Positions 29,504 to 54,711 of a DNA stretch of 64,000 nt are shown here, in pieces (positions within the stretch are counted from its first letter, which is position 1; each line of letters opens with the position of its first letter). The stretch lies in sequence record OZ196593.1; one strand, written 5' to 3'. The notes below the pieces were generated by a model. It was not told the origin of the DNA, did no database searches, and saw only the letters and a list, made by a program, of their open reading frames with translations. The translations under genes were made by a program, and so were the position numbers.

Positions 29504-29520
29504 CTTTTTTCTCGTAATGG

Positions 29521-29569
29521 TTGACTGTATTCTGTATTTAGGTTAGTATCTATCTCATCGAAACGAAAC
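29521..29569. promoter_or_regulatory. Nested divergent promoters (plus early, minus late)
   Basis: TTGACT-17-TAGTAT on plus with minus CTAAATA inside the spacer; ATCGAAACGAAAC at 29557. Confidence 0.75.
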
Positions 29570-44159: not shown

Positions 44160-44188
44160 TTGACTGTATTACTGTTTATATGTAATAA
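44160..44188. promoter_or_regulatory. Nested divergent promoters (plus early, minus late)
   Basis: TTGACT-17-TAATAA on plus; minus TATAAACA at 44180-44173. Confidence 0.65.
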
Positions 44189-52596: not shown

Positions 52597-52920
52597 ATGA
52601 ACATCATGAATGCACAAGACCTGCGAATCGTTGAAGAACTTATCGAGCAGAAAGACGCGACTGTTGTCGAAAAGTCTGACTATCGCGCTGCGATGGCATT
52701 TGCTTATGGTAGTATGTCTGCACCGCAACGCGAGATCTTCAAGACTTATCATAGCCCTTACTTAGCTGAACGCTATGACATTGAATACTGCACTGATACG
52801 CAAGTAATCTTGCCGACTGGTCACTTGAAGACTGCAATCGCGTTCATCAAAGACGTTCTACCAACGCAAGAAATTGATATTTTGAAGCGTGACTTTCAAT
52901 TTGACTTGGGGATATTGTAA
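52597..52920 (+). CDS. Hypothetical early protein
   Basis: Start ATG 52597 after GAGAGAACATT. Confidence 0.75.
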   Translation: MNIMNAQDLRIVEELIEQKDATVVEKSDYRAAMAFAYGSMSAPQREIFKTYHSPYLAERYDIEYCTDTQVILPTGHLKTAIAFIKDVLPTQEIDILKRDFQFDLGIL

Positions 52921-53456
52921 TGAAACTGAGTAACATATTATTATCAATGCTCGTCATTGCACTCATAGTCTCGATGGCTGGGTGCTCAGAGCCTGCAACG
53001 ATACCGACTGCGTATCAAGAAGGCGTGCAGTCTATTGATAGTGAGTTTCCCGATAACTCTCTCGATGCTGGTGGTCTTGATTGGGCGCATGAAGCTGTAG
53101 AAGAGACTGATCATTCGTTTGATGAGTATGATGACAGTGATAGCGGATTTGATTGGGGCGACGCTGCGATTGGTTTTGTAGCTGCTGAAGTGATTGACGA
53201 TGTGTTTGATTCGAGTAGCAGCAAGACAACGACTAAAACAGTCTACGTGCCAGTGTCTGATACTAAGAGTACACAGCCAAAAGCAGTAACGACTAGCACG
53301 AAGTCTGTTGCACCGACGACTAAGAAAGTAGTTAAGCCAAAGGCGAAGACTAAACAATCTAAACCAAAAGCGAAGAAAAAGAAGAAGAAATCTAAGTCTA
53401 AGAGCAAGCCACCTAAGAAGAAAAAGAAGAAGAAAAAGAAGAAAAAGAAACGTTAA
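52920..53456 (+). CDS. Lipoprotein with acidic core and poly-Lys tail
   Basis: Lipobox SMAGC; ends PPKKKKKKKKKKKR. Confidence 0.8.
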   Translation: MKLSNILLSMLVIALIVSMAGCSEPATIPTAYQEGVQSIDSEFPDNSLDAGGLDWAHEAVEETDHSFDEYDDSDSGFDWGDAAIGFVAAEVIDDVFDSSSSKTTTKTVYVPVSDTKSTQPKAVTTSTKSVAPTTKKVVKPKAKTKQSKPKAKKKKKKSKSKSKPPKKKKKKKKKKKKR

Positions 53457-53490
53457 GACCTAAAAAAGGGAGCTATATGCTCCCTTTTTG
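53456..53490. terminator. Bidirectional terminator with TAGGTCT flank (minus)
   Basis: AGACCTAAAAAAGGGAGC-TATAT-GCTCCCTTTTTG. Confidence 0.9.
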
Positions 53491-54051
53491 CTATTTCTTT
53501 TTAGCTGCAAGCGTTTTAGCACGCTTAGTTGCTGTTGATATAGCTTTTAGTTCTTTTTCCATCTTGGCTAAGTCGCTGACAAACTTCTCTGAGTTCTTGA
53601 TGTCGCTACGCAGTGCGCCTTTCGATGTCGCGATGTCTAAATCGCTGTTCAAGCTCGTACGAAGCTTGTGAGTCAAGAATGTTGCACGCTCGATGTCTTG
53701 CTCGAACTTGGCTACTTTCTTCGGCGTCACTTCAGTGTCTTTGCTTACCGATTGGTACTTTTCAATGCGCTTCATTAGCTTTTTCAGCTCTTTGTAGTCT
53801 TTACGTGCTTGACCGCCTGCGAACAACGCGCCACCAATCAAACCATTGATGCCCATACTAATTGCGCCCCACGTTGCCAATGGAATTGCAAGAGCAAGAC
53901 CACCAGTAGCTGCACCTGCACCTGCTGCACCAAGAGCACCAATTGTTGCACCTGCAACTGCACCGGTAGCTGCTGCTCGTTTAGCCCATTGACTAATCGT
54001 TGCCTCGTCGAGTGGTTTTACTTCGAACTCGTCGAATGTTTTTAATTCCAT
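53491..54051 (-). CDS. Putative head-packaged glycine-zipper membrane protein
   Basis: N-terminus MELKTFDEFEVKPLDE|A; about 55-aa Gly/Ala hydrophobic hairpin; basic helical C-terminus. Confidence 0.7.
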   Translation of the reverse strand: MELKTFDEFEVKPLDEATISQWAKRAAATGAVAGATIGALGAAGAGAATGGLALAIPLATWGAISMGINGLIGGALFAGGQARKDYKELKKLMKRIEKYQSVSKDTEVTPKKVAKFEQDIERATFLTHKLRTSLNSDLDIATSKGALRSDIKNSEKFVSDLAKMEKELKAISTATKRAKTLAAKKK

Positions 54052-54070
54052 GTGAATCCCTTATTAAAAG

Positions 54071-54138
54071 TGAGAGAGCGCGACCATCGAACCAATACTC
54101 GCAGTGACCGTGCGAAGAAACTCGGTCACACTCCCTCA
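54071..54138 (-). ncRNA. Candidate structured 5' leader (three-way junction)
   Basis: P1 54130-54138/54071-54079, P2 54123-54129/54104-54110 (7 perfect bp), P3 54099-54102/54080-54083; lies between late box and SD. Confidence 0.5.
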
Positions 54139-54154
54139 AAACTGTGTTATATTA

Positions 54155-54161
54155 TATTTAG
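54155..54161 (-). promoter_or_regulatory. Late promoter variant (CTAAATA)
   Basis: About 105 nt upstream of ATG 54051. Confidence 0.6.
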
Positions 54162-54282
54162 TGACAACTATTAATAAGAATGTCGTTTATAGCTCATTTA
54201 ACTGAAAATAGTTGTTGATTAAAGTGTAAAAATGACGTACTATGACGTAAATCAATATGAACTGCTTAAAAAGGACACAATC

Positions 54283-54711
54283 ATGACATCTACATCAATT
54301 ATGCGCGGCGCTAACACAGTTGTACGTGAGCTACAAATCTTCTCTGGTGACACATCAACTGTTGTAATTGGTGCACCTGCAAGTGGCAAGAATGCAATGC
54401 TGCTTGGTATGTTAGCTCAACGCGGTGCTGAGAACTGCACGTTTATCTGCACAGAAATGTATGCACGTAAAGCAATCAATATGCTACCACCAAAAGGTTT
54501 AGCTGTTCAATCAAATGCATCATTTGAGTCAATTGTCGGTGCTGTGTCGCGTGCGACTGCAAGCGAACGCGAGTTCATTGTCATTGAACATCTACCATCC
54601 AACCCACTGTTCGACGCTGTTGACGTACTAGAGTCAATCGTTCGAGCACACGATAAAAAACTAATCATCGGCATGCAAGCAGCACGCGATGGTATCACGC
54701 GAGATCTATAA
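54283..54711 (+). CDS. Degenerate P-loop (RecA/DnaB-like) protein
   Basis: GAPASGKNA Walker A-like, FIVIEHL Walker B-like; start ATG 54283. Confidence 0.5.
   Translation: MTSTSIMRGANTVVRELQIFSGDTSTVVIGAPASGKNAMLLGMLAQRGAENCTFICTEMYARKAINMLPPKGLAVQSNASFESIVGAVSRATASEREFIVIEHLPSNPLFDAVDVLESIVRAHDKKLIIGMQAARDGITRDL

Follow-up and report, generated by a model that had tools for sequence, protein, structure and literature searches.

We found that a divergent intergenic region of 231 bp in Vibrio phage K566 harbors a structured RNA element, encoded on the minus strand, which the comparison of related sequences indicates is very likely real and conserved. Judged in the same way, the element is common to the KVP40-like vibriophages, that is, Schizotequatrovirus and the nt-1 group. 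Its conserved fold is probably one imperfect hairpin of about 67 nt (fold B, referred to as the rod here), rather than the three-way junction (fold A) with which an earlier note on this DNA had started. KVP40-like phages are broad-host-range vibriophages that serve as models and as candidates for biocontrol in aquaculture, and to our knowledge their non-coding RNAs are essentially uncharted; likewise, we know of very few RNAs other than tRNAs in T4-type phages. Given that it combines invariant sequence, covariation, and a putative late promoter, and that it outlives the gene downstream, the element is a concrete candidate for a regulatory RNA of a lytic phage.

The window analyzed here is a stretch of 64,000 nucleotides from sequence record OZ196593.1 and represents Vibrio phage K566/K567 (100% identity over the 1.4 kb compared). 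K566 and K567 are KVP40-like T4-type phages of roughly 254 kb, and 16 sister isolates are 97.5 to 98% identical to the window. The element lies in front of a gene for a Gly-zipper membrane protein, which is the sole minus-strand gene for many kilobases around the locus and whose product matched no Pfam family above threshold. On the plus-strand side of the intergenic region the run of early genes resumes (nrdC.11-like, Dda, and others), and the divergent plus-strand gene is served by a sigma-70-type early promoter that is conserved among the relatives (Table 1). Since this promoter lies inside the annotated 5' extension of VPHK566_0188 (54232 to 54711, plus strand, 159 amino acids, start at 54232), the start of that gene is probably mis-called; its homologues all align from the ATG at 54283 (142 amino acids, SD AAGGA). 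The convergent gene at the other end of the locus (52920 to 53456, plus strand) encodes a lipoprotein-like product with a signal peptide ending in ...SMAGC and an extremely Lys-rich C terminus, whose final run of 12 Lys is encoded by a long A-rich DNA tract that could be slippage-prone.

The Gly-zipper gene has a leader of 103 nt, as measured from the CTAAATA at 54155 to 54161 to the ATG, compared with about 31 to 33 nt for the other three minus-strand genes of the window, each of which stands behind a TAAATA-type motif (CTAAATA, CATAAATA, and TATAAACA). This agrees with the earlier remark that the leader is much longer than the other late leaders. The motif in front of the element, CACTAAATA, is invariant, is accompanied by no conserved -35 element, and fits the T4-type late motif with its TATAAATA-like -10 sequence. 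We infer that it is a T4-type late promoter, with transcription presumably starting in the spacer between motif and hairpin, whose length ranges from 5 to 27 nt among the relatives. As a side observation, AAUACAGUCAAC occurs about 5 to 7 nt after late-promoter-like motifs at two places in the window (29515 to 29526 and 44162 to 44173, both on the minus strand), and its counterpart AUACAGUCAAG is found at positions 720 to 731 of a distant T4-like contig (L332), which makes three unrelated genes in all; the leader of the element has ACAGUUU where AAUACAGUCAAC stands elsewhere. Motifs of this type may be a conserved sequence with which the transcription of late RNAs begins in these phages.

Table 1. 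Features of the locus and of the RNA element in the K566 window (positions of the whole stretch; H1 to H3 are helices of the rod, P1 to P3 helices of the three-way junction).
Feature	Coordinates	Strand	Remarks
Bidirectional intrinsic terminator	53463-53489	both	closes the Gly-zipper transcription unit
Gly-zipper membrane-protein gene	53491-54051	-	ATG at 54051; 186 amino acids, Gly/Ala-rich, two-helix
SD AAGGGA of the Gly-zipper gene	54057-54062	-	
C + UUUU run	54066-54070	-	at the hairpin base; terminator-like tail
H1 (= P1) 3' strand, GCUCUCUCA	54071-54079	-	G-U pairs only on minus-strand reading
H2 3' strand, UGGUCGC	54080-54086	-	P3 3' strand in fold A
Near-invariant block, GGUCAC-N-GCGAGUAUUGGUU	54090-54109	-	spans the apical loop and the H3 3' strand and reaches into the 3' internal loop
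H3 (apical hairpin) 5' strand, UUCGCA	54111-54116	-	pairs with UGCGAG, 54098-54103
H2 5' strand, GUGACCG	54123-54129	-	partner in the rod is 54080-54086; serves as P2 5' strand in fold A
H1 (= P1) 5' strand, UGAGGGAGU	54130-54138	-	pairs with 54071-54079
P2, GUGACCG with CGGUCAC	54129-54123 with 54110-54104	-	fold A
P3, GCGA-G-UAUU with GAUG-G-UCGC		-	fold A
Spacer and predicted single-stranded 5' start of the RNA	54139-54154	-	ends in conserved CAGUUU
Late-promoter-like motif (T4-type), CACTAAATA	54155-54163	-	no -35 element; invariant in all variants, flanks diverge
Early promoter (sigma-70-type), TTGATT, 17 nt, TACTAT	54215-54243	+	outside the RNA; conserved block TTTACACTTTAGTCAACA in the alignment

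We collected seven distinct sequence variants of the element, stemming from six phage lineages and one metagenomic contig. These are K566 (identical to D480), KVP40 (identical to phi-pp2 and others), VH7D (identical to ValKK3 and others), F86 (with a sequence of its own), VS1 (one core common to VS1, VS2, and QD01), nt-1 (identical to CZ01 and a Logan contig), and the metagenomic contig, L328, which was reached via a 71%-identical Gly-zipper protein. L328 was the one new variant that protein searches yielded, together with distant Gly-zipper homologues that lack the element. Exact-pattern scans for further homologues covered IMG/VR, JGI metagenomes, and GTDB genomes; after filtering (in the case of JGI, of the matches listed), only KVP40 and VH7D were genuine, the remaining matches being chance or G+C-rich coding sequence. 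A search of IMG/VR for related loci with the Gly-zipper alignment found none.

Across the KVP40 group the intergenic sequence is recognizable about as well as its coding flanks, and among the seven variants the element is its best-conserved stretch. Three blocks are conserved, namely, the plus-strand sigma-70-type promoter, the invariant CACTAAATA, and the element with its U-run; the stretches between them and the SD region are not. Within the element, the apical block GGUCAC-N-GCGAGUAUUGG is identical in the six phage variants, with variation at the last two bases confined to nt-1, and L328 retains it with one inserted U. This near-invariance contrasts with the flanking genes, whose products share 47 to 66% identity. 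The element is single copy, as it occupies one place per phage record and gave one covariance-model match in the window.

All helices of the earlier note are present on the minus strand of K566, and RNAfold returned its three-way junction as the minimum-energy structure, with a centroid resembling fold B. The pairings of fold B, GUGACCG with UGGUCGC and UUCGCA with UGCGAG, are both available in K566 as well, and when either inner pairing is enforced, the energies of the two folds are 0.1 kcal/mol apart, so that two alternative folds of near-equal energy do exist in this phage. The 81-nt element of K566 has a z-score of -4.45, with 0 of 200 shuffles folding as well, and the elements of the relatives have z-scores of -3.5 to -6.2.

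To find out which fold is conserved, we counted pairs on ungapped registers anchored in the flanks, a procedure that is independent of structure and was chosen because MAFFT alignments misalign P1 and H3. Over the six basal positions of P1 (H1) in the seven variants, 41 of 42 cells are paired, and four of these six basal pairs show two-sided changes: position 1 from C-G to U-A in K566 and nt-1, and positions 3, 5, and 6 in F86. H1 and the fold-B helix together form a lower stem of 14 to 17 bp in all seven variants; position 6 of the fold-B helix is U-A in four phage variants and C-G in K566 and F86. L328 contains neither GUGAC nor GUCGC. Its H2 is rewritten base for base, from GUGACU/AGUCGC to ACUCGG/CCGAGU, and is stacked on P1, while the apical CGCA-UGGUCAC-UGCG and GUAUUUGGUU are retained. 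P2 and P3 of the three-way junction are unable to form in this variant, and its sole low-energy fold is the rod (-33 kcal/mol; z = -6.2). This full compensatory replacement of H2 where P2 and P3 are impossible points to the imperfect hairpin as the conserved fold and speaks against the three-way junction in that role.

Further up the hairpin, the closing pair of H3 changes from A-U to U-A in F86, and with only seven variants the support for H3 amounts to this one compensatory pair. P2 also has one compensatory pair (pair 7, A-U to G-C in K566), and P3 has no pair with two-sided changes. In a second count, based on a model-fitted alignment that is skewed in favor of the rod and has H3 out of place in K566 and F86, the rod had eight two-sided pairs with 94.8% of cells paired (versus 39 to 52% with the partner columns slid), and the three-way junction had five, four of them in the shared P1, with 96.4% of cells paired. 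Energy minimization yields the rod in KVP40, VH7D, F86, VS1, and L328, and fold A in K566 and nt-1. Given that G-U pairs in H1 and H2 arise only on the minus-strand reading, the minus strand is the functional one. Covariation among homologues, the absence of which the earlier note would have held against a functional RNA, is therefore present, and it strongly favors P1 and the fold-B helix.

The same data bear on the idea that the element is a bistable riboregulator or riboswitch, in which a ligand or protein shifts it between three-way junction and rod and thereby controls the Gly-zipper protein, a reading that we consider unlikely. In five of the six phage variants the two folds lie within 0.6 kcal/mol of each other, with fold A at the minimum in two lineages, and this near-isoenergy, combined with the compensatory change at pair 7 of P2, makes bistability possible for those lineages. 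Moreover, the complementarity between the GGUCAC loop and the 5' strand of H2 is kept in six of the seven variants, and P2 would form first during transcription. However, L328 keeps the block and the rod with P2 and P3 impossible, P3 is devoid of two-sided changes, and the element is also kept where there is no gene to regulate (see below). Since P1 is common to both folds, switching would leave the U-run-adjacent stem and the SD unchanged, so that no effect of toggling on termination or the SD is evident. The pairing of the UCUCU in P1 with the AGGGA of the SD, suggested earlier, is possible in K566 but is not conserved, as every relative has a different SD sequence and a different spacing between SD and P1. 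Hence, we found neither a riboswitch aptamer fold with covariation nor an expression platform. Rfam 15, riboswitch families included, gave no match to the K566 element at an E value of ≤10, nor on the element in KVP40, VS1, F86, nt-1, and L328 at an E value of ≤5, and the only Rfam matches in the scanned loci were terminators downstream of the gene; across these six variants, the RNA is indeed an unrecognized one.

A more specific version of this reading, in which most KVP40-like phages have a true bistable switch whose junction forms kinetically first and is then converted or held by a late protein or metabolite, seems to us quite improbable. It would imply that the block is invariant partly through serving both folds. 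If the bistable reading were true, the element would define a new class of phage riboregulators that time a late membrane protein or release a trans-acting RNA, and a functional alternative fold would make the element a natural RNA switch of compact size.

In public records the region is unannotated or covered by a doubtful small open reading frame (ORF), and the literature searched contained no mention of the element. K566 carries an annotated coding sequence of 40 amino acids, VPHK566_0187 (54052 to 54174, plus strand), which runs antisense to the structured RNA and its promoter, and on the minus strand there is a TTG-initiated ORF of 48 amino acids. Nevertheless, it is extremely unlikely that we are dealing with a chance structure, a small ORF, or a product of VPHK566_0187: loop indels of 1 to 2 nt between the variants break any frame, which led us to reject a small ORF, the pattern of covariation is that of base pairs, and z-scores reach -6.2. 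The frame of VPHK566_0187 is not conserved in the relatives, and from the comparison it is probably not a gene, an annotation that should be corrected. F86 has a comparable small coding sequence (L008, 1428 to 1520) that overlaps the promoter and the first part of the element.

Equally, an invariant core within variable inverted repeats could be a protein site in a cruciform or in a hairpin of single-stranded DNA, so that the element might act not as RNA but at the DNA level, for example in protein binding, as an origin, or as a signal for recombination. We regard this as very unlikely, given that pairing is kept with several G-U pairs, which are C-A mismatches on the other strand, that the U-run exists on one strand only, that a conserved promoter motif immediately precedes the element, and that the element is single copy. 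A sigma-70-like match on the plus strand opposite the element (GTCACA, 17 nt, TATATT with TG; 54125 to 54153) has its spacing destroyed by an 11-nt indel in the relatives and is probably fortuitous.

The earlier note had tied the element to the Gly-zipper gene, a connection that does not hold across the relatives. VS1, VS2, and QD01 have no Gly-zipper homologue; the gene is cleanly absent, which shows that it is dispensable for these phages. All three retain CACTAAATA, the hairpin, and the U-run. Ten bases past the U-run there follows a canonical terminator, GGGGCAUUUCUGCCCC-UUUU, behind which the convergent lipoprotein gene has its stop codon, an arrangement that, as read from the sequence, is the layout of a stand-alone small-RNA gene. 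Conversely, an exhaustive profile search located distant Gly-zipper homologues on other T4-like contigs, where late-promoter motifs (TATAAATA, CATAAATA, or CTAAATA) stand 27 to 30 nt before the first ATG and where the covariance model of the element found no match. Given that the element is kept without the gene and that distant homologues of the gene occur without the element, the two are separable modules. By this comparison, the Gly-zipper gene is an ordinary late gene that, specifically in this clade, has the hairpin inserted between promoter and ribosome-binding site. On two of the distant contigs (L330, 195 to 1140; L332, 747 to 1671), the Gly-zipper homologue is second in a two-gene late operon, whose first gene encodes a protein of 144 to 150 amino acids that is absent from the K566 locus.

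These observations also weigh on a purely cis-acting leader, which would stabilize the mRNA, limit its transcription or translation, or provide an RNase III or RNase E site, with the copy in VS1, VS2, and QD01 being a leftover. The element lies within 0 to 20 nt of the predicted 5' end and, in most lineages, immediately in front of the gene; this position would suit such a role, as would the long and nearly continuous double-stranded stem, which resembles the RNase III sites of phages such as T7 and of the lambda N leader. A stabilizing or processing hairpin, however, needs no invariant block of ~20 nt, and distant homologues of the gene manage without the element. In addition, three phages without the gene have retained the element together with an intact promoter and a terminator behind it; the core in these phages and that of nt-1 are about 93% identical, whereas the adjacent non-promoter intergenic DNA has diverged beyond recognition and is unalignable. 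The hairpin in these phages could be a recent relic, but overall we judge an exclusively cis-acting role to be rather improbable.

Every variant has a run of 4 to 6 U located 0 to 1 nt past the stem, which in nt-1 is interrupted (UAUUCUUUU). A G+C-rich stem of the CGAGGG/CCCUCG type followed by 4 to 6 U is found in seven of seven variants and in none on the reverse strand. The element does not have the compact, short-loop form of a terminator, its hairpin being about 67 nt long with internal loops; a scan for consensus intrinsic terminators did not call it, and a branched or bulged hairpin of 67 nt is atypical for an intrinsic terminator.

Taken together, we tentatively favor a mechanism in which the element is a late, promoter-proximal small RNA or attenuator. 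Transcription would start late in infection, a few bases after CACTAAATA, and the nascent RNA would fold into the imperfect hairpin, with a lower stem (H1 and H2) of 14 to 17 bp, an asymmetric internal loop, and an apical H3 with the loop (U)GGUCAC. Hairpin and U-run would then act as a promoter-proximal intrinsic terminator or attenuator with partial termination, releasing an RNA of about 85 to 110 nt whose 3' end presumably lies at the U-run, while read-through would supply the Gly-zipper mRNA where the gene exists; if termination were efficient, the gene would depend on this read-through. The apical block GGUCAC-N-GCGAGUAUUGG would be the functional surface, bound by a protein or by a base-pairing partner. 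Its invariance is not explained by maintenance of a stem and persists in L328 without fold A, suggesting sequence-specific recognition by protein or RNA; any action in trans is likewise presumptive. When the 64-kb window was scanned for duplexes with the apical block, the only target returned was the self-antisense site. Thus, of what had originally been proposed, an unrecognized structured RNA stands and a separate small RNA fits best, whereas a switch with a conserved junction or with control of the SD does not.

Among known RNAs, ARAGORN found no tRNA or tmRNA in the whole window, and the GGUUCGA of K566 is not conserved in the relatives. By inspection, similarities to a hammerhead core, a tRNA T-arm, and Qrr RNAs did not hold up, and a mimic of the type I-F CRISPR repeat was dismissed, as only about 8 of 9 bases are in common. 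With purine-type riboswitch aptamers, the element shares a compact three-way junction, which in K566 is the structure of lowest energy and in which P1 closes two hairpins joined by linkers of 0/1/0 nt. It differs from them in that it has no Rfam match and that P2 and P3 are not conserved in L328, and we found neither loop-loop covariation nor an expression platform in it.

The R1.1-type hairpins of T7 and the lambda N leader are processing sites for RNase III in phages. The element is similar to them in being an imperfect hairpin of ~60 to 70 nt that lies in the leader of a phage mRNA and whose lower and upper stems are separated by an asymmetric internal loop, but RNase III sites need no invariant primary sequence. 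PeSL (promoter-early stem-loop) cassettes of T4-type phages are multicopy and have early sigma-70 promoters. Like the element, they combine a promoter with a stem-loop in a module that lies in the plastic early region, at a boundary of variable gene content; the element, however, occupies one place per phage record and stands behind a late-type motif, which sets it apart from this family.

The closest parallels are promoter-proximal attenuators and small RNAs derived from 5' leaders. These include products of premature termination such as riboswitch- or leader-derived small RNAs. As in these systems, the element consists of a promoter, a stable hairpin within about 20 nt of it, and a U-run, followed by a promoterless gene, and VS1-type phages illustrate that such a short RNA can persist where the gene is missing. 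Unlike attenuators, it has no identifiable ligand, leader peptide, or antiterminator alternative, its hairpin is unusually long with an invariant apical sequence, and its promoter is of the T4 late type. The trans-acting small RNA of the lytic cycle of phage lambda (bioRxiv 10.1101/2024.10.31.621285) is similarly a small non-coding RNA encoded by a phage and expressed in lytic growth, as the element is predicted to be. The conserved block of the element could be a seed. The element is thus a new RNA family of a familiar general kind, the promoter-proximal hairpin or leader-derived small RNA, and it stands out for its length, for an apex that is invariant, and for a near-degenerate alternative fold that is conserved.
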